Source of the DNA: Bugula neritina
Lineage: Eukaryota > Animalia > Bryozoa
Assembly: GCA_964035545.1 (NCBI GenBank)
Contig: OZ037765.1
Span: 5,962,698-6,026,697 of the forward strand
Reading direction: 5' to 3'
DNA length: 64,000 nt
The notes under the pieces were generated by a model, which was not told the DNA's origin, ran no database searches, and saw only the letters and a program-made list of their open reading frames with translations. Positions within the stretch are counted from its first letter, which is position 1. The number at the start of each line of letters is the position of its first letter. This document shows, piece by piece, positions 20,801 through 44,800 of the stretch. Made by a program: the position numbers and the translations under genes.

Positions 20801-23800
20801 TTTTATATTTTAGAACTCCAGCTTTTATAAAAAAGGCTTTTTTTAAACAAAAATTTAATTTGTTTCACGTTTTTCACTTTTCCTTATACTGGTTGGACAT
20901 ATTCAAATTTTCTAGTTATCATTTGTAGGTCAATTTACCATATACAGTCTGAAATATGTGAATGCCTTGAGTTCTTCAATGTGAAATTAATTGTTAATTT
21001 ATGTACATGAAATCGAATATTTTCGCTGACTCCACCTGTCACCTTTGCTCCACCTCTCACACTGACTCCACCTCTCACCCTGATTTCAACTGTCACCCTT
21101 ACTCTACCTGTCGCCCTGACTCCATCTGTCACACTGACTCCACCTTTCACACTGACTCCACCTGTCACCCTGACTCCACCTGTCACCCTGACTCCACCTG
21201 TCACCCTTACTCCACCTGTCACCCTGACTCCACCTCTCACACTGACTCCACCTTTCACCCTGATTTCAACTGTCACCCTTACTCCACCTGTCACACTGAC
21301 TCCACCTGTCACACTGACTCCACCTGTCACCCTGACTCCACCTGTCACCCTGACTCCACCTGTCACCCTTACTCCACCTGTCACCCTGACTCCACCTGTC
21401 ACCCTGGCTCCACCTGTCACCCTGACTCCATCTGTCACCCTGACTCCACCTGTCACCCTGACTCCACCTGTCACCCAGACTCCACCTGTCACCCTGACTC
21501 CACCTGTCACCCAGACTCCACCTATCACCCTGACTCCACCTGTCACCCTTGCTCCATCTGTCACCCTGACTCCATCTGTCACCCTGACTCCACCTGTCAC
21601 CCTGACTCCACCTGTCACCCTGACTCCACCTGTCACCCTGACTCCACCTCTCACCCTGACTTCACCTTTCACCCTGAGCAGGTGTGGTTTAAAACTCAAA
21701 CATACTGTAATGGCAGCCACAACATTTTACTGTTGCACCCTTGGGGTAGTGCTTTTCATTTTACAGAAATGGTATATATCTGAGCACTTTTGTCTGTTTC
21801 AGTACCTGTGATCATGGAATATTTGAGTGTGTCGGGGAGTCATGTGGCCCCCTTAACTGCACAGACATGGAGTTCACTTGTAGCATTGGCAACTGTATAC
21901 CTAAGCTCTGGGTATGTGATAGCATGCCAGATTGTGAGAACGGAGAAGATGAAGAAGGCTGTGGTATGTTGGACATAACAACTTGTTCAATATGTTCACA
22001 GGCTACCTACATGTATATCATGACTCTAGAGGTGCACTTTTGTATGTCTGTTGGTTATTTGGTAGTTGGCCTCAGTTTACTTTATAATCTATTATCTGAG
22101 TGTTATTATTTCGTGGGTTGCTAGTAATAGCGTATCCACCATTCTTCTTTTACAGATTACAGCTGTGCCGAAAATGAATTCAAATGTGTAATGAGTAGTA
22201 AATGTATTCCACGATCAGATAGATGCAACGATGTGGTGGATTGTTTTGATGGCAGTGATGAGCTACTATGTGGTAGGTAACATCTTTTTCTATCAGTTTG
22301 CTTTTATAAAACCGTAAACTAGCCAATGACAATGTAACAGTGCACTCAGCTAAAATTGCTAAAGTTTTTTTCATAATTTATTCAAAGTTATTAAAATTTG
22401 TAAGTTTTGTATTTTTGTTTAAAAAATGAAAATTTTATTAGTTACGCCATGACAAGGCTAATTTTATAATTTTTGATTGGTGGGTGGAATTTTATAAACA
22501 AGGAAATCTGATAATATTATTTGTATGACTTGTATTCATATTTATTGTTAGTATTTACTGCTACAATATAATATCACATGTGGCTGTAAGTGGTGGGTTA
22601 TTCTGTACTCTGTAGACATGGAGTGCGAAAGTAACCAGCTGAAGTGTGGTAACGGCAGATGTATCATGAAAAGCTTCAAGTGTGACGGCTACCCAGACTG
22701 TGGGGCCATGGATGACACAGATGAGTCTGATTGTCCAGGTAGCTTCTGTTTGGTGCTTATAGTTTATGAGTTGTGAGACTAACCAACCTTTCTTCAGAAT
22801 CAGGCGTGTTTCTGTTTCACTGCGCTTTCAGACTTTGCATTATGGGAAAAGGTTTGTCATTTGATCAATGGGAGCAGTGTCATTGGAATAATGCCACAAC
22901 GCGGTATGGGTAAAAAAATATTTGAATAAACTGGCCATTCGCGTTCATGTGTAGTATGGGAATACAGTGATTGACTAGCGATAAATTTTGGCATTACGCT
23001 CATTTAGTCTGTAAGAGAAAAAACTTCAAAGACTCCCTTTGTGGTATTTCTCAGAACTAGAACACAAGCTTTCACTGATTTTGTTATGGCTGCATCTTCA
23101 CCATCAAGTCACACTAAATCCGTTTGATAATTTTAAGAAACTACTGTTTATCTATATTTTCAAATGTTCAGTGTGCACCAAAAACAAAATCATTTATGAG
23201 TCAAGTAAAAATGACTGAAAAGAATTTAATAGATTGCATAATACTAAATTACATTTCACTATATTTTGTATAGTCCTAATTTATAGTTTGTATGTATAGT
23301 TTGTATGTATAGTTTGTATGTATAGTTTGTATGTATAGTTTGTATGTATAGCTCATACTTATGTATTTTAGTATCAGCCTGCATACCCGGAAGAGAAATG
23401 TCTTGTATATCTAACCTTGGAGATCACATCTGTCTGCCAATTGCTCAAAAGTGTGATGGTCATGATGACTGTGGAAATGGATTGGATGAGGCCAACTGCC
23501 GTAAGTAGTATTAGCTAATCTAAACAATGCCATCTAGAAAATACTGTAAACTGTTTACATATTGACATGCTCATGTGATGAAATAACACTAGTTATACGT
23601 TGCTTTAAGCGATAAACATTAAAATTTGTTTCAGCTTAAAAATTATTTAAAGTTTGGAAGTTTTTGCATAAAAATAATCATTTTTAAAGCTGTACTTGCC
23701 TATTAGCTAAGATAACTGACAAAATCTTCATTTTCCTAATTATTTCAGCTTGCACATGTAAAGGCAACAACACTATGACATGCGATGTATGTAAATGCAT

Positions 23801-26800
23801 TGACGTGAATAAAGTGTGCGATGGGGTTGGCGACTGTTTGGACAACACGGATGAAGCCAATTGCCGTAAGTTTTACTAGTCACATGACATACCAATACAA
23901 AACACTGAACCGGATATTTCTTATTACCAAACATTGTAGCTATAGTATATGGAGTGATGAAAAAAATGTAAAAATTATGCACACTTAAACTATAAACACT
24001 ACATTTGAGATGTTGATGAGATTTGTGTATTTCTCTTACAGCATGTGGGGAAGGTTACTATATGTGTAACAACAAGACATGTATTTCTAGTCACAAAAGA
24101 TGTGATGGTGTTGAAGATTGTTCTCAGGGTGAAGATGAGATTTGTTCAACGACAACAGGTATAAGGCTTTTCACGGCAAGGCGTGTTTAAAGATATACGT
24201 TCTGCATATCTAGATTACATATAATATATTTATACATATAATATATAAAGTTACCAGATGTAGTTAGAATGTGCTATCTCTTGTCTTTTAATGTTCTGCA
24301 GCAAAAGCACAGTTTTAGCTCTATTGGTTGTCACTATTAGTTCCGTCTGTTTGAATTTACGACAAAAGATACAAAATCATTGCACAATGTTGTAGTGTTG
24401 ACTCGACACAGGTTAGCTTCACTTTGAATGATATGATTTTATAAAATATTTATAGTAAAGCCTACACCAACAACTACGGGATTACCATCTATTAGTACTA
24501 CAACCACTCCTACTACCACTGCCAGTACTAGTACTACCACCACCACCAGTACTACTACTACCACCACTCCAACCACCACCCGTACTACTCCTACTACCAC
24601 TGCCAGTACTAGTACTGGTACTACTACTGTCGAATGTGACCCAGTGAATGGAATGTCGGAGATTAATTTAATTCCTGACAGATACATAAACGTAAGTTGA
24701 CATTTGAAAAGATTTATTTGTCATACTTATACTGTTCATCTACTTAGAAAGTGTAAGCTGTGACTTTGATCTATCTGTAGCTTCAGCAAAGAGTGTAAAT
24801 GGAGTTGTTGTCTCATTTATATAGGTAAGCTCAGGTGTGAAAGAATACCTTCGCCCAGGACCTGCATTCCCTCTTCTTTGGCAAGGTGATAAAAATAATG
24901 AACAGGCAATCACAATTCAATTGAGTCAAGACCCTAGCAAAGAAATATACGTCAAGAGTGTAGTTCTTCCCGAGATAAGAAATGCAGGCTTGGTTGAAAT
25001 CATCCTTCTTGACAATTCTGAGAGAGGGTACAGCTTTAAAAGTGTTGATGAGGTAAAGTTTACACTCATTGGTCTAACAAACAACTCATCTGTAGCCAAA
25101 TCACAAATCTTTAACTATATTTTCATTAGCTGCAAATCTTTCGACGTTGAAATTGCATTAATGAGTTGTTACTGATGTTTCCTATCGGATTGTTTTGATC
25201 TACTTAATTTTGATCAATAAAAAAATGATTGTTTAAACTTATAATGCATGATGTGAGATGGTATACAGTGATATTCTACATGAGTAATATGATGTATTAA
25301 TTTGCTTCATGACGGTTGATTGACTGCTAGTAAATATTCAGTTGATTTCTAGAACATTTCATCTAGTTGTCGCAGTTTGGTCTGTTTTTTAAGTTCTGTT
25401 CATGTTCTCATATTATGTTCATGATTATGTTAGTGCAACTTCTGTAGGACCCTGAGGCCGCTGAAGACTATGCAGTAGAAGCGTACGGTTACAAGATCAT
25501 TGTTATAATGAATACTGGAGAGAAAGCTGAGGGTATCCGTATTGAAGCTAAGTTAGACATCGAGGCTTGCTTTGAGCACGTGTCACTACCAACCACAACT
25601 TTGAGAAGTAAATCTACGGCTGCTGTTGGCAAGGAAACTACCACTACCGCTGTCTATTTCAGCACATCCACGACTGAGCGTTGTGTTATGGTTGACGGGA
25701 TGTACAGCCCTGTGTTTATACCTGCTCAGTGGATACACGTGTCTTCGGGGGACAAGGAAAAGCTGAGACCAAGTCAGGCTGTTGGGTGGCAGTCACAGAG
25801 TTCTGACGATAAGCCATCTATAACAATATTCTTTCTATCGAAACCAGTTTATGTTAAAAGTCTGACTTTGATAAATACAAGAAATGTGAAGAGTTATAAT
25901 GTATATTTGACAACAGCGGTTGGAAAGATGGACTTGAAGCAGCAAGATATTGCAGTAAGTTTGAAGATTTATACTCGATAGTGTTATGAGTGTCAGGCAG
26001 CCATGGTGTAGGAAAAGCTGTTATTATATTCAGTGAGACATATGAATTTAGCATGATAATTTGTGTTCACAGTGGGTTGTGACTTTCAAAGTTGAAATTT
26101 CTTATTTTGTAACTGTTGAAGGATCCTACAGTTGGAATTGGTGCAACACTCCTTGTGGTAAAGATAGAGCTACTTCCTGTTGATGAGAGTTATTCTGTCT
26201 ACACATCCCTTTCAGTTACCGGATGCTTTGAAGAAGGTGAAGAGCTGCTTGACTAAACTATTGTACTTAATTTTTAAGTTTCATCTGGAAAAGTTATGTA
26301 TTATCTAAAGGTTGGAAGTAGCATAAGATAGGTGAAGACTGCAGGCATATACTCAGTTACTACCAGCTTGGATAATTTGTTGTCATTGGCTCTGTTTTAA
26401 CTGTTTAAAAATTGTATTTTCGAACATGTTTTGCAAGTGAGAGTTAAAATGTCACTGGATTGTGTATAATTTGAATAGATTTTGCAAGTTCTCCTGTCTT
26501 GTGTATTGCAGAACAAACAACAAGCAGCATTCAAGCTCCCACGACCACTGTGGTTCCGTCCACTGCTACCACTTCAAATATTTGTGAGCCTGTAGCTGGA
26601 ATGTCAGAACCTGGATTTATTCCTGATGAACATATACATGTACGTTTGCATTTCATCTGTCAGATGATGGGCTGTAAATAGTTCCATACACTAAATAATT
26701 AACTGAGAACAAAAAGGATATGATGCCATTGTTATTCTAACAATGTGTTTGACTTTAGAGATGTAACAATTTTTGTCATGTCCTTGACACTCAATTATTA

Positions 26801-29800
26801 GGTTAGGAGTTGTTCCCTTTGTGATGGTGCATCATTCAACCTAATAATCTAAAGCAAAAGCATAAAAGTTTCAGGGATTGGCTGATGCATGAAATCCGAA
26901 GTTTGTGACAGTAATGTTCTTAAAAAACATAGATATTTGGGTAGTGGCATAAATAATTTTATTTTGATTGATTATGTGAAAAGACTTTGTAGAAAGCTTG
27001 GAAACATATTTTTGTATTTTACTATCTAGCAGTGGTGCAGATGCGATGTTTTAGTTGTATTCTCATGTTCTAACAGTTACACTATAAAGTTCTTTTTAAA
27101 GATTATTTCAAAGGTTTGCTGCATTTACAATTTAAAAAATTAAAATCAGTAAGTTTTTGAGTTGTTTGAATTATTTGATTGACGCCAATATTTTTCAAGG
27201 GTGAACTACCCATTGTAAGTTTCTTTTTTTGTGATAAAATACTGAGGAAAAGTTGAACAATTTGAAAATAGAGAACTTCAGATGGTGCTTTAGACCTGAA
27301 TAAGATGAATGGAAACTTAATGCTTTCTACTAAAGACAAAAGTTAGGGAAAGAGATTCATGACAGAAAACATAGATTATAGAATGATTTACATATCATAT
27401 AAACCGAGTAAAAGTATGGTTCAATGTTTTGTTTTTAAGGTAGTGTGTGAATTATGCGTTGTTTCTACAGGTAAGCTCAGGGGAAGGAGAAAATCTACGC
27501 CCTGGCCCTACTTTCCCTCTCAACTGGGAAGCTGATAGTAATAAAAATCAAACAATTACAATTGAATTAAGTAAAGATCCGAAGAAAGAGATATATGTCG
27601 AGAAGTTAGTTTTCCCAGAGATTGTGGACACTGATTATGTGCAAATTATTCTGGAAGACAACTCAGAAAAAGGATATAGCTTTATAGACTTGGAGGAGGT
27701 AAGAAAATCATTAGATTGATTGGTAAAAAAAAGCTGAAGTAATATGGAACATAATTTCTTTCCCTAATCACCAGAAAATATTATTGGAAAAGGTACAAAG
27801 TGGCTGAGGATCTTGCTGCTATTCCTTGAACATGTAGAGTTACCAAACGTGATAATTTGTTGCAGGCTCCAGCGGCAGCTAAGGAGTATTATATTCAAGC
27901 TATGGGTTCAAGAATCTCTATCATAATGCACAAAGAAAACAGCGCGTGGGGGACTCATATAGAAGCAAAGCTAGAATGTTTTGCTTGCTATGAACCAATC
28001 ATAGAGCAAACCACTGTGTCTGAAACATCTCCTTCTACTGCTTCTCCAGCCACTACAACTGCTGAATCTTGTGAAATCGTCGATGCAATGAAGGAGCCTC
28101 AGTATTTGCCAACGTATCGCATTGAAACTTCACCAAGTGATAGTGAGAAAAAGAATCTGAGACCGGCAGAGTTGCTTCCATGGGTATCGAAGGTGCCCGC
28201 TGTTGGTAATGAAAAGCCGTTTGTCACGGTAACTTTGACTGATGACGGTTCATTGGCTCCAGTAGACAGACTAGAGTTCCCTGTGTTGGAGAATGTTGAT
28301 GAAGTTACAGTTAGCATTATGACGAGTCCTGATGGACCTGAGAAGATTGTGACACCTGAAGAGACATTGCCAACCACAAGCGGTTTGATTGTGAAATTGA
28401 AGTCCCAACCAGAAGCTTTGACAGTGGTCATTAGATTTTCACCAACTGATTCTTCAAAACCAGTCAAGGTGCAACTCGATGTGTTTGCTTGTTTGAAACC
28501 AATAGAGTCAACCACTAGCAAACTATCAACAACTTCAATGAGAGTCCCGACTGAAACAACAACTTCATTAAAGACAACTCCATCAACTGCTTCTCCAGCC
28601 ACTACGACTGCTATATCTTGTGAAATCGTCGATGCAATGAAGGATCCTCAGTATTTGCCAACGTATCGCATTGAAACTTCACCAAGTGATAGTGAGAAAG
28701 AGAATCTGAGACCCACAGAGGTGCTTCCATGGGTATCGAAGGTGCCCGCTGTTGGTAATGAAAAGCCGTTTGTCACAGTAACTTTGACTGATGACGGTTC
28801 ATTGGCTCCAGTAGACAGACTAGAGTTCCCTGTGTTGGAGAATGTTGATGAAGTTACAGTTAGCATTATGACGAGTCGTGATGGACCTGAGAAGATTGTG
28901 ACACCTGAAGAGACATTGCCAACCACAAGCGGTTTGATTGTGAAATTGAAGTCCCAACCAGAAGCTTTGACAGTGGTCATTAGATTTTCACCAACTGATT
29001 CTTCAAAACCAGTCAAGGTGCAACTCGATGTGTTTGCTTGTTTGAAACCAATAGAATCAACCACCAGCAAACTATCAACAACTTCAATGAGAGTCCCGAC
29101 TGAAACAACAAGTTCATTAAAGGCTACTCCATCAACTGCTTCTCCTGCCACTACGACTGCTATATCTTGTGAAATCGTCGATGCAATGAAGGATCCTCAA
29201 TATTTGCCAACGTATCGCATTGAAACTTCACCAAGTGATAGTGAGAAAGAGAATCTGAGACCGACAGAGGTGCTTCCATGGGTATCGAAGGTGCCCGCTG
29301 TTGGTAATGAAAAGCCGTTTGTCACGGTAACTTTGACTGATGACGGTTCATTGGCTCCAGTAGACAGACTAGAGTTCCCTGTGTTGGAGAATGTTGATGA
29401 GGTTACAGTTAGCATTATGACGAGTCCTGATGGGCCTGAAAAGATTGTGACACCTGAAGAGACATTGCCAACCACAAGCGGTTTGATTGTGAAATTGAAG
29501 TCCCAACCAGAAGCTCTGACAGTGGTCATTAGATTTTCACCAACTGATTCTTCAAAACCAGTCAAGGTGCAACTCGATGTGTTTGCTTGTTTGAAACCAA
29601 TAGAATCAACCACCAGCAAACTATCAACAACTTCAATGAGAGTCCAGACTGAAACAACAACTTCATTAAAGGCTACTCCATCAACTGCTTCTCCGGCCAC
29701 TACGACTGCTATATCTTGTGAAATCGTCGATGGAATGAAAGATCCACAATATTTACCAAATAATCGCATCGAAACTTCACCAAGTGATAGTGAGAAAGAG

Positions 29801-32800
29801 AATCTGAGACCGACAGAGGTGCTTCCATGGGTATCGAAGGTGCCCGCTGTTGGTAATGAAAAGCCGTTTGTCACGGTAACTTTGACTGATGACGGTTCAT
29901 TGGCTCCAGTAGACAGACTAGAGTTCCCTGTGTTGGAGAATGTTGATGAAGTTACAGTTAGCATTATGATGAGTCCTGATGGGCCTGAAAAGATTGTGAC
30001 ACCTGAAGAGACATTGCCAACCACAAGCGGTTTGATTGTGAAATTGAAGTCCCAACCAGAAGCTTTGACAGTGGTCATTAGATTTTCACCAACTGATTCT
30101 TCAAAACCAGTCAAGGTGCAACTCGATGTGTTTGCTTGTTTGAAACCAATAGAATCAACCACCAGCAAACTATCAACAACTTCAATGAGAGTCCCGACTG
30201 AAACAACAACTTCATTAAAGACAACTCCATCAACTGCTTCTCCTGCCACTACGACTGCTATATCTTGTGAAATCGTCGATGCAATGAAGGATCCTCAATA
30301 TTTGCCAACGTATCGCATCGAAACTTCACCAAGTGATAGTGAGAAAGAGAATCTGAGACCGACAGAGGTGCTTCCATGGGTATCGAAGGTGCCCGCTGTT
30401 GGTAATGAAAAGCCGTTTGTCACGGTAACTTTGACTGATGACGGTTCATTGGCTCCAGTAGACAGACTAGAGTTCCCTGTGTTGGAGAATGTTGATGAAG
30501 TTACAGTTAGCATTATGACGAGTCCTGATGGGCCTGAAGAGATTGTGACACCTGAAGAGACATTGCCAACCACAAGCGGTTTGATTGTGAAATTGAAGTC
30601 CCAACCAGAAGCTCTGACAGTGGTCATTAGATTTTCACCAATTGATTCTTCAAAACCAGTCAAGGTGCAACTCGATGTGTTTGCTTGTTTGAAACCAATA
30701 GAATCAACCACCAGCAAACTATCAACAACTTCAATGAGAGTCCCGACTGAAACAACAACTTCATTAAAGGCTACTCCATCAACTGCTTCTCCGGCCACTA
30801 CGACTGCTATATCTTGTGAAATCGTCGATGGAATGAAAGATCCACAATATTTACCAAATAATCGCATCGAAACTTCACCAAGTGATAGTGAGAAAGAGAA
30901 TCTGAGACCGACAGAGGTGCTTCCATGGGTATCGAAGGTGCCCGCTGTTGGTAATGAAAAGCCGTTTGTCACGGTAACTTTGACTGATGACGGTTCATTG
31001 GCTCCAGTAGACAGACTAGAGTTCCCTGTGTTGGAGAATGTTGATGAAGTTACAGTTAGCATTATGATGAGTCCTGATGGGCCTGAAAAGATTGTGACAC
31101 CTGAAGAGACATTGCCAACCACAAGCGGTTTGATTGTGAAATTGAAGTCCCAACCAGAAGCTTTGACAGTGGTCATTAGATTTTCACCAACTGATTCTTC
31201 AAAACCAGTCAAGGTGCAACTCGATGTGTTTGCTTGTTTGAAACCAATAGAATCAACCACCAGCAAACTATCAACAACTTCAATGAGAGTCCCGACTGAA
31301 ACAACAACTTCATTAAAGACAACTCCATCAACTGCTTCTCCTGCCACTACGACTGCTATATCTTGTGAAATCGTCGATGCAATGAAGGATCCTCAATATT
31401 TGCCAACGTATCGCATCGAAACTTCACCAAGTGATAGTGAGAAAGAGAATCTGAGACCGACAGAGGTGCTTCCATGGGTATCGAAAGTGCCCGCTGTTGG
31501 TAATGAAAAGCCGTTTGTCACGGTAACTTTGACTGATGACGGTTCATTGGCTCCAGTAGACAGACTAGAGTTCCCTGTGTTGGAGAATGTTGATGAAGTT
31601 ACAGTTAGCATTATGACGAGTCCTGATGGGCCTGAAGAGATTGTGACACCTGAAGAGACATTGCCAACCACAAGCGGTTTGATTGTGAAATTGAAGTCCC
31701 AACCAGAAGCTCTGACAGTGGTCATTAGATTTTCACCAATTGATTCTTCAAAACCAGTCAAGGTGCAACTCGATGTGTTTGCTTGTTTGAAACCAATAGA
31801 ATCAACCACCAGCAAACTATCAACAACTTCAATGAGAGTCCCGACTGAAACAACAACTTCATTAAAGAGAACTCCATCAACTGCTTCTCCTGCCACTACG
31901 ACTGCTATATCTTGTGAAATCGTCGATGCAATGAAGGATCCTCAATATTTGCCAACGTATCGCATCGAAACTTCACCAAGTGATAGTGAGAAAGAGAATC
32001 TGAGACCGACAGAGGTGCTTCCATGGGTATCGAAGGTGCCCGCTGTTGGTAATGAAAAGCCGTTTGTCACGGTAACTTTGACTGATGACGGTTCATTGGC
32101 TCCAGTAGACAGACTAGAGTTCCCTGTGTTGGAGAATGTTGATGAAGTTACAGTTAGCATTATGACGAGTCCTGATGGGCCTGAAAAGATTGTGACACCT
32201 GAAGAGACATTGCCAACCACAAGCGGTTTGATTGTGAAACTGAAGTCCCAACCAGAAGCTCTGACAGTGGTCATTAGATTTTCACCAACTGATTCTTCAA
32301 AACCAGTCAAGGTGCAACTCGATGTGTTTGCATGTTTGAAACCAATAGAATCAACCACCAGCAAACTATCAACAACTTCAATGAGAGTCCCGACTGAAAC
32401 AACAACTTCATTAAAGACAACTCCATCAACTGCTTCTCCTGCCACTACGACTGCTATATCTTGTGAAATCGTCGATGCAATGAAGGATCCTCAATATTTG
32501 CCAACGTATCGCATCGAAACTTCACCAAGTGATAGTGAGAAAGAGAATCTGAGACCGACAGAGGTGCTTCCATGGGTATCGAAGGTGCCCGCTGTTGGTA
32601 ATGAAAAGCCGTTTGTCACGGTAACTTTGACTGATGACGGTTCATTGGCTCCAGTAGACAGACTAGAGTTCCCTGTGTTGGAGAATGTTGATGAGGTTAC
32701 AATTAGCATTATGACGAGTCCTGATGGGCCTGAAGAGATTGTGACACCTGAAGAGACATTGCCAACCGCAAGCGGTTTGATTGTGAAATTGAAGTCCCAA

Positions 32801-35800
32801 CCAGAAGCATTGACAGTGGTCATTAGATTTTCACCAACTAATTCTTCAAAACCAGTCAAGGTGCAACTCGATGTGTTTGCATGTTTGAAACCAATAGAAT
32901 CAACCACCAGCAAACTATCCACAACTTCAATGAGAGTCCCGACTGAAACAACAACTTCATTAAAGACAACTCCATCAACTGCTTCTCCTGCCACTACGAC
33001 TGCTATATCTTGTGAAATCGTCGATGGAATGAAAGATCCACAATATTTACCAAATAATCGCATCGAAACTTCACCAAGTGATAGTGAGAAAGAGAATCTG
33101 AGACCGACAGAGGTGCTTCCATGGGTATCGAAGGTGCCCGCTGTTGGTAATGAAAAGCCGTTTGTCACGGTAACTTTGACTGATGACGGTTCATTGGCTC
33201 CAGTAGACAGACTAGAGTTCCCTGTGTTGGAGAATGTTGATGAAGTTACAGTTAGCATTATGACGAGTCCTGATGGGCCTGAAAAGATTGTGACACCTGA
33301 AGAGACATTGCCAACCACAAGCGGTTTGATTGTGAAATTGAAATCCCAACCAGAAGCTTTGACAGTGGTCATTAGATTTTCACCAACTGATTCTTTAAAA
33401 CCAGTCAAGGTGCAACTCGATGTGTTTGCATGTTTGAAACCAATAGAATCAACCACCAGCAAACTATCAACAACTTCAATGAGAGTCCCGACTGAAACAA
33501 CAACTTCATTAAAGACAACTCCATCAACTGCTTCTCCAGCCACTACGACTGCTATATCTTGTGAAATCGTCGATGGAATGAAAGATCCACAATACTTACG
33601 AAATAATCGCATCGAAACTTCACCAAGTGATAGTGAGAAAGAGAATCTGAGACCGACAGAGGTGCTTCCATGGGTATCGAAGGTGCCCGCTGTTGGTAAT
33701 GAAAAGCCGTTTGTCACGGTAACTTTGACTGATGACGGTTCATTGGCTCCAGTAGACAGACTAGAGTTCCCTGTGTTGGAGAATGTTGATGAAGTTACAG
33801 TTAGCATTATGACGAGTCCTGATGGGCCTGAAAAGATTGTGACACCTGAAGAGACATTGCCAACCACAAGCGGTTTGATTGTGAAATTGAAGTCCCAACC
33901 AGAAGCTCTGACAGTGGTCATTAGATTTTCACCAACTGATTCTTCAAAACCAGTCAAGGTGCAACTCGATGTGTTTGCTTGTTTGAAACCAATAGAATCA
34001 ACCACCAGCAAACTATCAACAACTTCAATGAGAGTCCCGACTGAAACAACAACTTCATTAAAGGCTACTCCATCAACTGCTTCTCCAGCCACTACGACTG
34101 CTATATCTTGTGAAATCGTCGATGGAATGAAAGATCCACAATATTTACCAAATAATCGCATCGAAACTTCACCAAGTGATAGTGAGAAAGAGAATCTGAG
34201 ACCGACAGAGGTGCTTCCATGGGTATCGAAGGTGCCCGCTGTTGGTAATGAAAAGCCGTTTGTCACGGTAACTTTGACTGATGACGGTTCATTGGCTCCA
34301 GTAGACAGACTAGAGTTTCCTGTGTTGGAGAATGTTGATGAGGTTACAGTTAGCATTATGACGAGTCCTGATGGGCCTGAAAAGATTGTGACACCTGAAG
34401 AGACATTGCCAACCACAAGCGGTTTGATTGTGAAATTGAAGTCCCAACCAGAAGCTCTGACAGTGGTCATTAGATTTTCACCAACTGATTCTTCAAAACC
34501 AGTCAAGGTGCAACTCGATGTGTTTGCTTGTTTGAAACCAATAGAATCAACCACCAGCAAACTATCAACAACTTCAATGAGAGTCCCGACTGAAACAACA
34601 ACTTCATTGAAGGCAACTCCATCAACTGCTTCTCCTGCCACTACGACTGCTATATCTTGTGAAATCGTCGATGGAATGAAAGATCCACAATATTTGCCAA
34701 CTGATCGCATTGATACTTCACCAAGTGACAGTGAGAAAGAGAATCTGAGACCCACAGAGGTGCTTCCATGGGTATCGAAGGTGCCCGCTGTTGGTAATGA
34801 AAAGCCGTTTGTCACGGTAACTTTGACTGATGACGGTTCATTGGCTCCAGTAGACAGACTAGAGTTCCCTGTGTTGGAGAATGTTGATGAGGTTACAGTT
34901 AGCATTATGACGAGTCCTGATGGGCCTGAAAAGATTGTGACACCTGAAGAGACATTGCCAACCACAAGCGGTTTGATTGTGAAATTGAAGTCCCAACCAG
35001 AAGCTCTGACAGTGGTCATTAGATTTTCACCAACTGATTCTTCAAAACCAGTCAAGGTGCAACTCGATGTGTTTGCTTGTTTGAAACCAATAGAATCAAC
35101 CACCAGCAAACTATCAACAACTTCAATGAGAGTCCCGACTGAAACAACAACTTCATTAAAGGCTACTCCATCAACTGCTTCTCCAGCCACTACGACTGCT
35201 ATATCTTGTGAAATCGTCGATGGAATGAAAGATCCACAATATTTACCAAATAATCGCATCGAAACTTCACCAAGTGATAGTGAGAAAGAGAATCTGAGAC
35301 CGACAGAGGTGCTTCCATGGGTATCGAAGGTGCCCGCTGTTGGTAATGAAAAGCCGTTTGTCACGGTAACTTTGACTGATGACGGTTCATTGGCTCCAGT
35401 AGACAGACTAGAGTTTCCTGTGTTGGAGAATGTTGATGAGGTTACAGTTAGCATTATGACGAGTCCTGATGGGCCTGAAAAGATTGTGACACCTGAAGAG
35501 ACATTGCCAACCACAAGCGGTTTGATTGTGAAATTGAAGTCCCAACCAGAAGCTCTGACAGTGGTCATTAGATTTTCACCAACTGATTCTTCAAAACCAG
35601 TCAAGGTGCAACTCGATGTGTTTGCTTGTTTGAAACCAATAGAATCAACCACCAGCAAACTATCAACAACTTCAATGAGAGTCCCGACTGAAACAACAAC
35701 TTCATTGAAGGCAACTCCATCAACTGCTTCTCCTGCCACTACGACTGCTATATCTTGTGAAATCGTCGATGGAATGAAAGATCCACAATATTTGCCAACT

Positions 35801-38800
35801 GATCGCATTGATACTTCACCAAGTGACAGTGAGAAAGAGAATCTGAGACCCACAGAGGTGCTTCCATGGGTATCGAAGGTGCCCGCTGTTGGTAATGAAA
35901 AGCCGTTTGTCACGGTAACTTTGACTGATGACGGTTCATTGGCTCCAGTAGACAGACTAGAGTTCCCTGTGTTGGAGAATGTTGATGAGGTTACAGTTAG
36001 CATTATGACGAGTCCTGATGGGCCTGAAAAGATTGTGACACCTGAAGAGACATTGCCAACCACAAGCGGTTTGATTGTGAAATTGAAATCCCAACCAGAA
36101 GCTTTGACAGTGGTCATTAGATTTTCACCAACTGATTCTTCAAAACCAGTCAAGGTGCAACTCGATGTGTTTGCATGTTTGAAACCAATAGAATCAACCA
36201 CCAGCAAACTATCAACAACTTCAATAAGAGTCCCGACTGAAACAACAACTTCATTAAAGACAACTCCATCAACTGCTTCTCCTGCCACTACGACTGCTAT
36301 ATCTTGTGAAATCGTCGATGCAATGAAGGATCCTCAATATTTGCCAACGTATCGCATTGAAACTTCACCAAGTGATAGTGAGAAAGAGAATCTGAGACCC
36401 ACAGAGGTGCTTCCATGGGTATCGAAGGTGCCCGCTGTTGGTGATGAAAAGCCGTTACTCACGGTAACTTTGACTGATGACGGTTCATTGGCTCCAGTAG
36501 ACAGACTAGAGTTCCCTGTGTTGGAGAATGTTGATGAGGTTACAGTTAGCATTATGACGAGTCCTGATGGGCCTGAAAAGATTGTGACACCTGAAGAGAC
36601 ATTGCCAACCACAAGCGGTTTGATTGTGAAATTGAAATCCCAACCAGAAGCTTTGACAGTGGTCATTAGATTTTCACCAACTGATTCTTTAAAACCAGTC
36701 AAGGTGCAACTCGATGTGTTTGCATGTTTGAAACCAATAGAATCAACCACCAGCAAACTATCAACAACTTCAATGAGAGTCCCGACTGAAACAACAACTT
36801 CATTAAAGACAACTCCATCAACTGCTTCTCCAGCCACTACGACTGCTATATCTTGTGAAATCGTCGATGGAATGAAAGATCCACAATACTTACCAAATAA
36901 TCGCATCGAAACTTCACCAAGTGATAGTGAGAAAGAGAATCTGAGACCGACAGAGGTGCTTCCATGGGTATCGAAGGTGCCCGCTGTTGGTAATGAAAAG
37001 CCGTTTGTCACGGTAACTTTGACTGATGACGGTTCATTGGCTCCAGTAGACAGACTAGAGTTTCCTGTGTTGGAGAATGTTGATGAGGTTACAGTTAGCA
37101 TTATGACGAGTCCTGATGGGCCTGAAAAGATTGTGACACCTGAAGAGACATTGCCAACCACAAGCGGTTTGATTGTGAAATTGAAGTCCCAACCAGAAGC
37201 TCTGACAGTGGTCATTAGATTTTCACCAACTGATTCTTCAAAACCAGTCAAGGTGCAACTCGATGTGTTTGCTTGTTTGAAACCAATAGAATCAACCACC
37301 AGCAAACTATCAACAACTTCAATGAGAGTCCCGACTGAAACAACAACTTCATTAAAGACAACTCCATCAACTGCTTCTCCAGCCACTACGACTGCTATAT
37401 CTTGTGAAATCGTCGATGGAATGAAAGATCTACAATATTTACCAAATAATCGCATCGAAACTTCACCAAGTGATAGTGAGAAAGAGAATCTGAGACCGAC
37501 AGAGGTGCTTCCATGGGTATCGAAGGTGCCCGCTGTTGGTAACGAAAAGCCGTTTGTCACGGTAACTTTGACTGATGACGGTTCATTGGCTCCAGTAGAC
37601 AGACTAGAGTTCCCTGTGTTGGAGAATGTTGATGAGGTTACAGTTAGCATTATGACGAGTCCTGATGGGCCTGAAAAGATTGTGACACCTGAAGAGACAT
37701 TGCCAACCACAAGCGGTTTGATTGTGAAATTGAAATCCCAACCAGAAGCTCTGACAGTGGTCATTAGATTTTCACCAACTGATTCTTCAAAACCAGTCAA
37801 GGTGCAACTCGATGTGTTTGCTTGTTTGAAACCAATAGAATCAACCACCAGCAAACTATCAACAACTTCAATGAGGGTCCCGACTGAAACAACAACTTCA
37901 TTGAAGGCAACTCCATCAACTGCTTCTCCTGCCACTACGACTGCTATATCTTGTGAAATCGTCGATGCAATGAAGGATCCTCAATATTTGCCAACGTATC
38001 GCATTGAAACTTCACCAAGTGATAGTGAGAAAGAGAATCTGAGACCGACAGAGGTGCTTCCATGGGTATCGAAGGTGCCCGCTGTTGGTAATGAAAAGCC
38101 GTTTGTCACGGTAACTTTGACTGATGACGGTTCATTGGCTCCAGTAGACAGATTAGAGTTCCCTGTGTTGGAGAATGTTGATGAGGTTACAGTTAGCATT
38201 ATGACGAGTCCTGATGGGCCTGAAAAGATTGTGACACCTGAAGAGACATTGCCAACCACAAGCGGTTTGATTGTGAAATTGAAGTCCCAACCAGAAGCAT
38301 TGACAGTGGTCATTAGATTTTCACCAACTGATTCTTCAAAACCAGTCAAGGTGCAACTCGATGTGTTTGCATGTTTGAAACCAATAGAATCAACCACCAG
38401 CAAACTATCAACAACTTCAATGAGAGTCCCGACTGAAACAACAACTTCATTAAAGACAACTCCATCAACTGCTTCTCCTGCCACTACGACTGCTATATCT
38501 TGTGAAATCGTCGATGCAATGAAGGATCCTCAATATTTGCCAACGTATCGCATTGAAACTTCACCAAGTGATAGTGAGAAAGAGAATCTGAGACCGACAG
38601 AGGTGCTTCCATGGGTATCGAAGGTGCCCGCTGTTGGTAATGAAAAGCCGTTTGTCACGGTAACTTTGACTGATGACGGTTCATTGGCTCCAGTAGACAG
38701 ACTAGAGTTCCCTGTGTTGGAGAATGTTGATGAAGTTACAGTTAGCATTATGACGAGTCCTGATGGGCCTGAAAAGATTGTGACACCTGAAGAGACATTG

Positions 38801-41800
38801 CCAACCACAAGCGGTTTGATTGTGAAATTGAAGTCCCAACCAGAAGCTCTGACAGTGGTCATTAGATTTTCACCAACTGATTCTTCAAAACCAGTCAAGG
38901 TGCAACTCGATGTGTTTGCTTGTTTGAAACCAATAGAATCAACCACCAGCAAACTATCAACAACTTCAATGAGAGTCCCGACTGAAACAACAACTTCATT
39001 AAAGGCTACTCCATCAACTGCTTCTCCAGCCACTACGACTGCTATATCTTGTGAAATCGTCGATGGAATGAAAGATCCACAATATTTACCAAATAATCGC
39101 ATCGAAACTTCACTAAGTGATAGTGAGAAAGAGAATCTGAGACCGACAGAGGTGCTTCCATGGGTATCGAAGGTGCCCGCTGTTGGTAATGAAAAGCCGT
39201 TTGTCACGGTAACTTTGACTGATGACGGTTCATTGGCTCCAGTAGACAGACTAGAGTTTCCTGTGTTGGAGAATGTTGATGAGGTTACAGTTAGCATTAT
39301 GACGAGTCCTGATGAGCCTGAAAAGATTGTGACACCTGAAGAGACATTGCCAACCACAAGCGGTTTGATTGTGAAATTGAAGTCCCAACCAGAAGCTCTG
39401 ACAGTGGTCATTAGATTTTCACCAACTGATTCTTCAAAACCAGTCAAGGTGCAACTCGATGTGTTTGCTTGTTTGAAACCAATAGAATCAACCACCAGCA
39501 AACTATCAACAACTTCAATGAGAGTCCCGACTGAAACAACAACTTCATTGAAGGCAACTCCATCAACTGCTTCTCCTGCCACTACGACTGCTATATCTTG
39601 TGAAATCGTCGATGGAATGAAAGATCCACAATATTTCCCAACTGATCGCATTGATACTTCACCAAGTGACAGTGAGAAAGAGAATCTGAGACCCACAGAG
39701 GTGCTTCCATGGGTATCGAAGGTGCCCGCTGTTGGTAATGAAAAGCCGTTTGTCACGGTAACTTTGACTGATGACGGTTCATTGGCTCCAGTAGACAGAC
39801 TAGAGTTCCCTGTGTTGGAGAATGTTGATGAGGTTACAGTTAGCATTATGACGAGTCCTGATGGGCCTGAAAAGATTGTGACACCTGAAGAGACATTGCC
39901 AACCACAAGCGGTTTGATTGTGAAATTGAAATCCCAACCAGAAGCTTTGACAGTGGTCATTAGATTTTCACCAACTGATTCTTCAAAACCAGTCAAGGTG
40001 CAACTCGATGTGTTTGCATGTTTGAAACCAATAGAATCAACCACCAGCAAACTATCAACAACTTCAATAAGAGTCCCGACTGAAACAACAACTTCATTAA
40101 AGACAACTCCATCAACTGCTTCTCCTGCCACTACGACTGCTATATCTTGTGAAATCGTCGATGCAATGAAGGATCCTCAATATTTGCCAACGTATCGCAT
40201 TGAAACTTCACCAAGTGATAGTGAGAAAGAGAATCTGAGACCGACAGAGGTGCTTCCATGGGTATCGAAGGTGCCCGCTGTTGGTAATGAAAAGCCGTTT
40301 GTCACGGTAACTTTGACTGATGACGGTTCATTGGCTCCAGTAGACAGACTAGAGTTCCCTGTGTTGGAGAATGTTGATGAAGTTACAGTTAGCATTATGA
40401 CGAGTCCTGATGGGCCTGAAAAGATTGTGACACCTGAAGAGACATTGCCAACCACAAGCGGTTTGATTGTGAAATTGAAGTCCCAACCAGAAGCTCTGAC
40501 AGTGGTCATTAGATTTTCACCAACTGATTCTTCAAAACCAGTCAAGGTGCAACTCGATGTGTTTGCTTGTTTGAAACCAATAGAATCAACCACCAGCAAA
40601 CTATCAACAACTTCAATGAGAGTCCCGACTGAAACAACAACTTCATTAAAGGCTACTCCATCAACTGCTTCTCCAGCCACTACGACTGCTATATCTTGTG
40701 AAATCGTCGATGGAATGAAAGATCCACAATATTTACCAAATAATCGCATCGAAACTTCACTAAGTGATAGTGAGAAAGAGAATCTGAGACCGACAGAGGT
40801 GCTTCCATGGGTATCGAAGGTGCCCGCTGTTGGTAATGAAAAGCCGTTTGTCACGGTAACTTTGACTGATGACGGTTCATTGGCTCCAGTAGACAGACTA
40901 GAGTTTCCTGTGTTGGAGAATGTTGATGAGGTTACAGTTAGCATTATGACGAGTCCTGATGAGCCTGAAAAGATTGTGACACCTGAAGAGACATTGCCAA
41001 CCACAAGCGGTTTGATTGTGAAATTGAAGTCCCAACCAGAAGCTCTGACAGTGGTCATTAGATTTTCACCAACTGATTCTTCAAAACCAGTCAAGGTGCA
41101 ACTCGATGTGTTTGCTTGTTTGAAACCAATAGAATCAACCACCAGCAAACTATCAACAACTTCAATGAGAGTCCCGACTGAAACAACAACTTCATTGAAG
41201 GCAACTCCATCAACTGCTTCTCCTGCCACTACGACTGCTATATCTTGTGAAATCGTCGATGGAATGAAAGATCCACAATATTTGCCAACTGATCGCATTG
41301 ATACTTCACCAAGTGACAGTGAGAAAGAGAATCTGAGACCCACAGAGGTGCTTCCATGGGTATCGAAGGTGCCCGCTGTTGGTAATGAAAAGCCGTTTGT
41401 CACGGTAACTTTGACTGATGACGGTTCATTGGCTCCAGTAGACAGACTAGAGTTCCCTGTGTTGGAGAATGTTGATGAGGTTACAGTTAGCATTATGACG
41501 AGTCCTGATGGGCCTGAAAAGATTGTGACACCTGAAGAGACATTGCCAACCACAAGCGGTTTGATTGTGAAATTGAAATCCCAACCAGAAGCTTTGACAG
41601 TGGTCATTAGATTTTCACCAACTGATTCTTCAAAACCAGTCAAGGTGCAACTCGATGTGTTTGCTTGTTTGAAACCAATAGAATCAACCACCAGCAAACT
41701 ATCAACAACTTCAATGGGAGTCCCGACTAAAACAACAACTTCATTAAAGGCAACTCCATCAACTGCTTCTCCAGCCACTACGACTGCTATATCTTGTGAG

Positions 41801-44800
41801 ATCGTCGATGGAATGAAGGATCCTCAATATTTGCCAACGTATCGCATTGAAACTTCACCAAGTGATAGTGAGAAAGAGAATCTGAGACCGACAGAGGTGC
41901 TTCCATGGGTATCGAAGGTGCCCGCTGTTGGTAATGAAAAGCCGTTTGTCACGGTAACTTTGACTGATGACGGTTCATTGGCTCCAGTAAACAGACTAGA
42001 GTTCCCTGTGTTGGAGAATGTTGATGAGGTTACAGTTAGCATTATGACGAGTCCTGATGGGCCTGAAAAGATTGTGACACCTGAAGAGACATTGCCAACC
42101 ACAAGCGGTTTGATTGTGAAATTGAAGTCCCAACCAGAAGCTCTGACAGTGGTCATTAGATTTTCACCAACTGATTCTTCAAAACCAGTCAAGGTGCAAC
42201 TCGATGTGTTTGCTTGTTTAAAACCAATAGAATCAACCACCAGCAAACTATCAACAACTTCAATGAGAGTCCCGACTGAAACAACAACTGGATATTACAG
42301 CTCAACAGTGTCTTTACAACAGCCCTTTGAAAGTAGCACAGCTTCTACTACTCCTTTTTACTCCACACCCTGCATCGTTCATAATGGTTTGTTCAATTTG
42401 ATTTTTTTATCACTATTATTTTAATAATGATTTTGTTTGTTTCCTTTATTTAAACATGTTTTCATCACTTGCTTTTTAGCAGTTTCTTCTTTTTAGTTTT
42501 TCTTTTGGCTTCTTTCAATTGTAATTTTCATTCGTTCTTCAGCTCTTTCACATTTTTTGTTATTGTTCCAGTTTGCCGTTAACCTATATAATTCTCTAGT
42601 AACCACATTTAGTTTCTTGATGCCTTTTTTATGCTTTATTTAATGACGTCCCATTGTTATTGCTGATTATGATCGTATCCTGGTGTAGCTCTGATTTCTG
42701 TGTTGTTCTCATAATCTATTTACATGTTTACAGTAATGAGAACTGGTTCCATTCCATTAACCAATATTCAAGCAACTGCTGGTTCATCATTTGATTTATT
42801 GACCGATTCTCCTGATGATTGGGTTAGTCCCGCCTCTACCGTTGCGCCAACAATTGACATTCACTTTGGTGCTACTCCTCTCTATGTCAGCCATGTCGGC
42901 GTTTTTCATGCTCAAAATGTTGACCATCTTCAACTCAACTCTGTGATTCAACTCCAGGTTTGTGTGCACCTTTTTTTCGATATCTTTTTCTTGTTAACTA
43001 TGCATCTTTTCAAGTCTAAATTTTCTCTTACCAACTGTTTGCATTTATATTTTTCGTTTGCAGGTTTTTGGCAATCGCAATGGATCTTCATTTTTGAGGT
43101 TTTACATGAATGATTTGCATCTTCAAGTTTATCCTCTTTCAACATCAGAGCCGGTTTCATTCAAACTGGCAATATTTGCATGCTTGACTGCAACTACCAC
43201 ACTAATGCCTCCAACATCTGCTAGCACCCCTGCTGGTAAGTGCTATTTACTGTTTTATGTATTGTTTTTGTTTTTTGTTTGCGTAATTGTTCTTTTAGTG
43301 GCTTCTGAATAGGCTTTGACCGTTGTCTCATAGAACTATTTTGTTGTTGTTTGTATTGTTGTTATAATAATCGCATTTTTTTGGCCACTTATTCTTTAAC
43401 TTGTGTTTTACTTTCATGGTGTATCTGTTTGTCGTTTGTCTGTCAAAGTTTTTAGATATGCCTACATAATATTATTTAATTGCTTTGAATGTCCATCTTT
43501 TACACGTGAAGTTTTGAAGGTTTTTGTCACAGTCTTCATTATACTTTCTCGAGTCCTTGCTATTCAATGTTCACAGTACATATTTCTCACACTTTCTTTG
43601 CTATGTCTGCTGTAAGTCACTGTTTCAGTTTGTCCCCTATTCTTTAGTGTAGTATCGGTTGTTTCCAGTCATTACATCTTGTTTCTAACTCCATCCATTT
43701 ATATTCTGCTGGTATATAGTAGGTTTAACGCTTATCTTTAGTGTTAGTCAGCATTCAACCTTGTTTTTTCCCTATGCAATTTATTGCTTAATGCTGACTA
43801 TATTTAGCTGTGTTTTTTTTTAATTTCACCCTTTGGTACAAGGTTTATTTTTCAGCTTTTCAAATTAGCATGCAACGTACAGTTTTTAAGCTATATATAT
43901 GTTGGCTGTGTTATGAAAACTGTTTACCGCGGTACTTAACTGTTCATTACAGCTATATCTTGTAATGCAAAAACATATTGCTTTGAAAAACTTCTTCTGA
44001 CCAATGATGTATGTCATCTAAACCATTCCCATTGTTTTACTAAACTGCATAAATTAATGTTTTTGTCTTGCAGAATACTGCATTGTCCCTACTGGCACCT
44101 TTGGCACATCTTCACCAGCTGATGAACTAGTCGGGTACATTGATGTCGACAATCAAGCTGGCTTCAATATATCTGCTGGAGATAAGCCTGTTCGTTTGGG
44201 TGACCAAGTTCCTAGTGATTTGGTAGTCAAGTCAATACTTAAATGTGAACAGTGGTGAGTCTATAATTCACATCTGTTGAGTTTAAGGTAATAACTTTAT
44301 GTAATGTAAGGTTTTCAGCTTTTCAAAGAATCTTTGACACACTACATTCATGCAGTAATAAAGTATTTATAGATACCTTAGCTATAGATGTAGATAATAG
44401 GTAAGGTGTATATGCTTAGATTAATACTGCATAAATAAAGTGTGTCCAGGATTCCTTAAAATACGTGTTTCTGTAACTTTGAACACTTAACTTGTGCCGC
44501 TTTCAACATTAGTTGCTTCGTACAATCATTTATAACTCAAAAACTAATGCAAGCTTTTTTTACAATCATTTATAACTGAGCTCTTTAATCAGCCGTATAA
44601 CTGAGCTGTGTGATTTAGATAACTCTTTAATCAGCATATTGCATCTTTTACATTTAAATTGTGTCTCTTCAGCAGTGAGCTTTGCATGTTTTTCATTTCA
44701 ACCACTTGTTTTGCAGTCAATGTGAAGGCACCTCTCTAGCCTGCTCAGAGTACACGCCATGTCCATGCAGCTGGTCCGAGTGGACTGACTACGGTGAATG

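Follow-up and report, generated by a model that had tools for sequence, protein, structure and literature searches.

What kind of protein is encoded by a gene whose centre is one giant exon filled with near-identical units? This question is raised by 64,000 nucleotides (nt) of the bryozoan Bugula neritina (GenBank assembly GCA_964035545.1, contig OZ037765.1, positions 5,962,698 to 6,026,697), the whole of which is called the window here and numbered from its first letter. We found that the locus forms the core of a single, very large gene for a secreted protein on the SCO-spondin plan, and that its product is a giant secreted protein of the SCO-spondin/ap2 type, built around a new discoidin-fold module that is an orphan at the sequence level. 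The 30 modules comprise ~5,500 amino acids (aa), about 60% of a protein whose total length of ~8,500-9,000 aa was estimated without an assembled model. These figures agree with a preliminary description of this DNA, made from its letters, which had placed more than half of an ~8,500-aa protein in such modules.

The repeat unit and its predicted fold

The array lies in an open frame of 4864 aa on the plus strand (27830..42421), which spans it without a stop or an indel. A pattern scan of this frame gave 26 units at an exact spacing of 183 aa (549 nt), with the domain starts at 28070 + 549n. Each unit consists of a 141-aa domain and a 42-aa linker. Within the domain, Cys is found at residues 1 and 141 only; it is the first and the last residue in all 26 array domains and in the relatives described below. 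The domain is acidic (isoelectric point 4.4) and its 141 residues hold no N-glycosylation sequon. Half of the linker is Ser or Thr (21 of 42 residues, 50%), with three Pro and without acidic bias.

With a profile of the array domain family, applied to exons analysed singly, four divergent modules split by introns were located. D1 (24635-25570), D2 (25682-26226) and D3 (26583-27988) lie upstream of the array and D4 (~42372-43183) lies downstream; D2 is a shortened module of ~126 aa. The preliminary description had counted three divergent, 26 near-identical and one divergent modules, each with a ~141-aa domain that starts and ends with Cys and a ~42-aa Ser/Thr/Pro linker. The pattern scan and the family profile together returned the same 30 modules, and the anatomy proved to be exact in all 26 units.

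The structure of the unit domain was predicted by AlphaFold2 with a 19-sequence alignment of single domains (A1), which gave a pLDDT of 95.7 and a pTM of 0.89. A single-sequence model (pLDDT 54.8) was set aside and not used for fold searches. The model was compared with 48,161 chains by VIA-align, and the matches were DDR1 (Z 15.0, root-mean-square deviation 2.7, 134 residues aligned), Factor VIII C (Z 14.8), DDR2 (Z 14.6), Neuropilin-1 b1 (Z 14.4), Factor V C2 (Z 14.2), CASPR2 discoidin (Z 14.1), IFT25 (Z 14.0), Discoidin I (Z 13.7) and CBM32 modules (Z 12.3-13.5). The top matches, from DDR1 to CASPR2, cover model residues 1..141, that is, from Cys to Cys. Foldseek ranked neuropilin-1 b1 first (E 1.7e-5; probability 1.00, TM 0.65-0.73), the top matches in the ESM Atlas were DDR2 (TM 0.78) and a lactadherin-like protein (0.76), and the language-model neighbours of the unit bear PF00754. 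Judging from the predicted model, we confidently assign the modules to the discoidin (F5/8 type C-like) fold. The fold check by AlphaFold and Foldseek, with animal discoidin domains as the best matches, agrees with the discoidin-type fold suggested earlier.

Model residues 1 and 141 align to residues 274/424 of NRP1, 30/185 of DDR1 and 2020/2169 of FVIII, which we take to be at or beside the cysteines of the canonical N-to-C disulfide. In the model, the two Cys of the module fall where the canonical terminal disulfide has its cysteines, aligned end to end as the preliminary description had expected, and the Cys1-Cys141 bond itself is predicted. The module has 141 aa, against ~150-160 aa for the single-domain discoidin chains that it matched.

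The relation to the F5/8 type C family was then sought at the level of sequence. At E ≤ 10, Pfam returned nothing for the unit, for the D1-D4 exon pieces or for any of the 19 family members. A six-frame search of the whole genome with PF00754 gave 37 exon matches, of which none was in the window. The phmmer search of the unit against PDB gave noise only (Raf1, E 0.03), and the best PDB profile match of the family was CBM32 at E 0.49. Two FA58C alignments were built from the discoidin genes of this genome and their relatives; hhalign compared the family with them at a probability of 0.2%, the alignments being narrow (Neff 1.8-2.6). A protein search with the family alignment, which covered only proteins of 78-247 aa, returned nothing at E ≤ 0.001. 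Over the whole genome the family profile matched this gene alone, which appears to have no paralogues and no cross-match to the canonical FA58C exons.

Read by eye, the family order I-x-[ST]-S...L-R-P...P-W...hydrophobic strand...N-V...A-C presumably parallels the canonical ITASS...ARL...AW...WLQVDL...YGC. Because there is no sequence-level link to PF00754, it is from the fold, the terminal cysteines and the position alone that we infer the descent of the modules from the SCO-spondin discoidin domain. The domain family is absent from Pfam and yet has a confident discoidin fold. In another gene of the genome (L036, G000:C2:16802474-16805608), a canonical discoidin C-terminus is followed by a long array of ~29-aa repeats rich in Gly, Pro and Thr (GRPDGVSTGRPGINENPD...).

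The array units are 96-99% identical to their own consensus, with zero indels. When unit 26 is excluded, pairwise differences are 0-26 nt per 549; unit 26 has a divergent linker and 40-50 nt differences. Units 4 and 6, 12 and 14, 20 and 23, and 21 and 24 are identical, and units 15 and 22 differ by 1 nt. Most units bear private substitutions in a structured pattern, and the few differences among the Bugula units concentrate in residues 6-19. Because of this pattern of identical and near-identical units, the array points to 26 recent copies of one unit, produced by duplication or conversion of blocks of two and three units.

An independent GenBank assembly of B. neritina has the same array at 97% identity, with a length of ~10.8 kb or ~20 units, vs 14.5 kb here. 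Either the copy number varies, then, or it depends on the assembly. That the number 26 is partly an assembly artefact, the real array being shorter or longer, is in our estimate improbable. The shorter GenBank array, which is broken over three models, and the identity of several units would fit such an artefact. However, the frame of 4,864 aa is open without a single indel, the private substitutions are structured and found in most units, and a long array is present in two independent assemblies regardless.

The GC content of the block between 28 and 42 kb is 0.43-0.44, and that of the rest of the AT-rich window is 0.29-0.40 outside two repeat regions. TRF overlooked the array because its longest period is 500 and the array has a period of 549. 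Minus-strand open reading frames of 167, 350, 533 and 1265 aa (28099-41778) were considered and rejected as by-products of a 549-nt repeat that is stop-free in that frame.

Gene structure, transcription and relatives

The features of the gene are collected in Table 1. On the evidence of Pfam matches to exons, they follow the frame of VWD/C8/TIL, LDLa (LDL-receptor class A), array and TSP1 that had been described from the letters, with TIL exons among the TSP1 exons and a weak cystine-knot match after them. For EMI, single exons gave no Pfam match, and the CCPGY..C motif stands alone in exon 9511-9681. The 60-aa exon at 44074-44254 is likewise without a Pfam match. The middle exons of D1 and D3 are equal in length and phase, and the phase-1 junction 26236|26512 rebuilds a Glu codon. 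The limits 24456-43235 that had been given for the module region turned out to be true exon boundaries, with an acceptor AG at 24454-24455 and a donor GT at 43236-43237; this donor is used in the RNA-derived contigs.

Table 1. Features of the gene in the window (positions in nt; linker and exon lengths in aa where so marked; profile, array domain family profile).
Feature	Position	Strand	Evidence
N-terminal exons: CCPGY motif (EMI-like), EGF, three VWD starts, C8, three TIL	9511..20693	+	Pfam on single exons
EGF	9722-9859	+	Pfam
VWD (three)	10478-10711, 13975-14223, 17769-18035	+	Pfam
TIL (three)	13363-13692, 16453-16863, 20313-20693	+	Pfam
C8	15959-16216	+	Pfam
Six LDL-receptor class A exons	21750..24187	+	Pfam PF00057, E 3.5e-12 to 1.6e-4
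Thr/Pro/Ser-rich linker (~60 aa) and first ~20 residues of D1	24456..24691	+	AG 24454-24455, GT 24692; profile positions 1-21
D1 middle exon, 228 nt	24825..25052	+	Profile E 1.8e-8; AG/GT sites
D1 C-terminal part, linker, D2 positions 1-84	25448..25954	+	Profile E 6.7e-20; genome search E 9.3e-16; splice sites
D2 C-terminal exon	26122..26236	+	Profile positions 112-138; splice sites, phase
Linker and D3 positions 1-20	26512..26639	+	Profile; splice sites
D3 middle exon, 228 nt	27471..27698	+	Profile E 2.8e-10; splice sites
Giant exon, 14,521 nt: D3 C-terminal part, 26 units, first 6 residues of D4	27866..42386	+	AG 27864-27865, GT 42387-42388
D4 middle exon	42734..42957	+	X3 contig joint; profile positions 13-79, E 4.9e-4; splice sites
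D4 C-terminal exon and short Thr/Pro linker	43064..43235	+	X1 and X3 joints; profile positions 116-138
60-aa exon between D4 and first TSP1	44074..44254	+	RNA-derived contigs, GT..AG joints on both sides
~11 TSP1-like exons, with at least 5 TIL exons between them	44717..56543	+	Pfam; W..W..C motifs in frames
Weak VWC exon	56920-57093	+	Pfam E 0.0088, below curated cut-off
First half of cystine-knot exon	57525-57728	+	Pfam E 0.019, below curated cut-off

Public runs X1, X3, X14 and X16 were compared as contigs over positions 42250-48249, where X1 and X3 cover exons only. A 1,290-nt contig of X3 consists of the blocks 42251-42360, 42733-42954, 43061-43234, 44073-44253, 44716-44913, 45044-45197 and 45422-45589, with GT..AG at five of the six joints, several of which are common to X1. 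It runs from the 3' end of the giant exon through both D4 exons and the 60-aa exon into two TSP1 exons and a TIL exon. In the TSP1/TIL region, RNA joints were found at 44913|45044, 45199|45424 and 47146|47870. The DNA-like run X16 was colinear with the window and identical to it. The contigs show that the gene has transcripts in which the array exon is joined to those for TSP1. On the 5' side, from the LDLa exons to the giant exon by way of D1-D3, every junction checked had canonical GT/AG sites and phases that fit. Of the splicing of the array to both VWD and TSP1 exons, on which the preliminary description depends, the TSP1 side is established by the RNA-derived contig, and the VWD/LDLa side is predicted from the sites.

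The RNA-derived contigs of X1, X3 and X14 carry common substitutions relative to the window, amounting to a few percent in exons. Because of this difference, the public RNA is attributed to another haplotype or to a sibling or cryptic lineage of the B. neritina complex. Run X14 is an oligo-dT metatranscriptome labelled biofilm.

The unit is 97% identical to three B. neritina 'hypothetical proteins' (EB796_009846-8). In the GenBank assembly that contains them (GCA_010799875.2, VXIV02001558.1, 104627-133747; L050), the order of LDLa, array and TIL/TSP1 is kept, and the locus is split into five consecutive unnamed models on the same strand: TIL+LDLa, 153 aa, 312 aa, 2,921 aa of array, and TIL/TSP1. 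Because the annotation splits the gene in this way, the protein would have escaped studies of bryozoan settlement by proteomics and transcriptomics. The earlier expectation that no orthologue with the same array had been characterised held, as an exhaustive phmmer search and a literature search found none. The literature search also found no paper on a bryozoan SCO-spondin counterpart or on an adhesive protein of this kind.

The exhaustive phmmer search covered 1.84 billion representatives and returned nine real relatives of the unit at 30-38% identity; all are fragments without a name that repeat its arrangement of domain and linker. For two of them there are longer contigs, L047 (ENA) and L048/L049 (Logan), which contain ~8 and at least 6 divergent modules. 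In both, C8/TIL/LDLa are found upstream of the modules; TIL/TSP1 downstream were reached in L047 only. The outer modules of the relatives have introns at the profile positions of D1-D4 (after ~20 and ~85-93), and their central modules are intronless and form a single exon.

A module tree was built on 67 shared columns, which are few, so that it is indicative only. In this tree, modules group by position and not by species: D4 falls with the last L047 module (support 0.90), D2 with L048 U1/U5 and the P0005_c class, and the Bugula array units inside the central intronless class of other organisms. The last two central modules of L047 (7174-7599 and 7738-8163) have identical profile scores, and the same sequence is found in protein P0015; the adjacent identical modules look like an independent recent duplication of a unit.

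The multi-unit array is therefore older than Bugula, and in Bugula one central module was amplified to 26 copies. The preliminary description had supposed that a single discoidin slot was turned into the array; this picture is revised here, as 6-8 divergent units of several conserved sub-types are found, within the same context of the gene, in at least two other organisms. The gene is a fully resolved example of the passage from an SCO-spondin-type gene to a bead-and-linker polymer in which one amplified module makes up more than half, with intermediate states of 6-8 divergent units kept in relatives.

Two shorter repeats were observed among the N-terminal exons. Between the third TIL and the first LDLa exons, TRF reported an 18-nt tandem repeat of 36 copies (21026..21677), which has a GC content of 0.44, like the array exon, and no Pfam match. 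Two of its plus-strand frames are open (TPPVTL, Thr/Pro-rich, or DSTCHP), and a minus-strand open reading frame of 261 aa overlaps it. It may form a second mucin-like exon, a short one. The other repeat, a sequence of 70 nt in two tandem copies with 95% matches (14517-14654), falls in the VWD region, in a stretch flanked by coding exons.

Possible function of the protein

Von Willebrand factor, mucins and SCO-spondin form disulfide-linked polymers by means of their VWD-C8-TIL heads and cystine-knot tails, and Ser/Thr/Pro linkers of such composition are typical substrates of O-glycosylation. In the Bugula protein, the VWD/C8/TIL head and the cystine-knot tail would multimerise the chain through disulfides, and the linkers would be O-glycosylated and would keep it extended and hydrated. 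Through the discoidin beads, the chain could bind a ligand of glycan, matrix or substrate type at many sites along an extended surface, each with low affinity, and the resulting fibre or gel might act in this fouling animal as an adhesive, as mucus or as a cuticle matrix. Because of the polymer-building ends and the Ser/Thr/Pro linkers, and because loops serve for ligand binding in most of the solved structures of discoidin domains and CBM32 modules that are among the top matches (according to their titles), we rank first a polymerising adhesive, mucus or matrix fibre with multivalent discoidin beads, which we consider reasonably probable. The structural parts of this reading are much more certain than the functional parts, and it is the architecture only that suggests an adhesive or matrix function.

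Several points weigh against such a fibre. For the LDLa/VWD side, it is splice sites and phases, and not RNA, that predict the joining to the array. The cystine knot, VWC and EMI rest on weak or motif-level matches. The modules have no sequence-level similarity to PF00754 or to the FA58C alignments. The conserved residues of the family (LRP, PW, GM and NV) resemble structural core motifs of discoidin domains, and therefore say nothing about a binding site. Finally, the Bugula unit is acidic, unlike the Lys-rich flatworm ap2 repeats (22.5% Lys in Tmed-ap2, PMC9229212).

The coincidence of the conserved residues with core motifs would also be expected if the discoidin modules were inert, rigid and protease-resistant spacers like CysD, in a hydrated mucus or cuticle polymer that is neither lectin nor glue. 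This is rather unlikely, even if the module is shorter than canonical discoidin domains, the units are homogenised and not diversified, and no lectin-family profile matches. The ligand binding through loops of most solved discoidin and CBM32 structures among the top matches speaks against spacers, as do the non-random concentration of unit differences in residues 6-19 and the maintenance of the fold in several sub-types across species. If the beads bind ligands, they might instead be pattern-recognition lectins of an agglutinin for clotting or immunity, similar to hemolectin or hemocytin and derived from coelomocytes, which traps microbes or seals wounds between zooids. Hemolectin and hemocytin combine VWD, TIL and discoidin domains, and discoidin and CBM32 folds bind sugars. 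However, the LDLa and ~11 TSP1 modules are outside the hemolectin plan, and we regard such an agglutinin as very unlikely.

The domain order of EGF/VWD-C8-TIL x3, LDLa, discoidin-fold region, TSP1/TIL and VWC/cystine knot is that of SCO-spondin, which would make the gene a candidate bryozoan SCO-spondin orthologue with a role as a developmental or neural fibre, its array being a lineage-specific elaboration without adhesion. We think this quite unlikely, as bryozoans are not known to have a central canal or Reissner fibre, and a canonical FA58C domain was not found in the window. Moreover, the lophotrochozoan SCO-spondin-like proteins studied so far occur in adhesive mucus (PMC7333891). Bugula neritina is a model fouling organism, and in the literature searched no adhesive or matrix protein of this sort was found for a bryozoan.

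Comparison with known systems

SCO-spondin (SSPO) is the Reissner-fibre glycoprotein of chordates and has one canonical F5/8 type C domain. The Bugula gene resembles it in the three VWD-C8-TIL sets, the LDLa cluster, a central discoidin-fold element, the alternation of TSP1 and TIL, and VWC and cystine knot, the last two being weak. Unlike SCO-spondin, it has no canonical FA58C domain (PF00754) in the window; there are 30 modules that are invisible to the PF00754 profile and parted by mucin-like linkers.

Insect hemolectin and hemocytin are likewise large, secreted and multimerising, with VWD, TIL and discoidin domains, but their discoidin domains are two in number and canonical, and they are not known to contain an LDLa cluster or a TSP1 series. 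Gel-forming mucins with CysD share the VWD-C8-TIL head, the cystine-knot tail and disulfide-closed domains that interrupt O-glycosylated Ser/Thr/Pro. In the Bugula protein, however, the beads dominate (141 aa vs 42-aa linkers), they have a discoidin fold and not that of CysD, and LDLa and TSP1 are present. The sea-star protein Sfp1 is a large adhesive protein with VWD and discoidin-type lectin domains; unlike the Bugula protein, it has few, canonical discoidin domains and is not known to have a tandem array or a TSP1/LDLa frame. Sfp1 has been cited as a homologue in the limpet study discussed below (PMC7333891).

Among flatworms, Mlig-ap2 has VWD, TIL and LDLa domains, 46 central repeats of 221-255 aa, and TSP1; it is O-glycosylated, carries Gal-beta1,3-GalNAc, and its depletion by RNA interference abolishes adhesion (PMC6410801). 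In related ap2 genes of flatworms, giant exons measure 15 kb or more and the repeats are Lys-rich (PMC9229212), and the arrays of 20-46 repeats of a few hundred aa make up about two thirds of the protein (PMC6410801, PMC9229212). Mlig-ap2, Mile-ap2 and Tmed-ap2 are thus like the Bugula protein in the VWD/TIL/LDLa head, the central array in a giant exon and the TSP1/TIL tail. The units are different: 221-330 aa, Lys-rich and without a reported fold in flatworms, and 183 aa, acidic and with a predicted discoidin fold in Bugula. No flatworm protein was returned by the exhaustive phmmer search of the 1.84 billion representatives, a library in which the presence of Mlig-ap2 was unverified.

In the limpet, P-vulgata_3 of the pedal mucus is SCO-spondin-like in its N-terminal third (VWD x3, C8, TIL, LDLa x5), with an in situ signal in the sole, and P-vulgata_6 is a separate fragment of the adhesive mucus with four TSP1 and a cystine knot (PMC7333891). 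Unlike the Bugula gene, they were reported as separate incomplete transcripts without a central array. As a speculation, the two might be the ends of one gene broken by repeats, as in the GenBank annotation of Bugula.

A wider proposal is that an old spiralian family of adhesive fibres, derived from SCO-spondin, has the bead-linker array as its core, which would so far have escaped recognition. The same fold would then be hidden in the flatworm ap2 repeats and in the gap between P-vulgata_3 and P-vulgata_6, and the Bugula protein would be a larval or rhizoid cement whose unit number is tuned by block duplication. We hold this to be doubtful as a whole, with a low probability; it is nevertheless a concrete hypothesis that joins SCO-spondin, the limpet mucus proteins and the flatworm ap2 adhesives.

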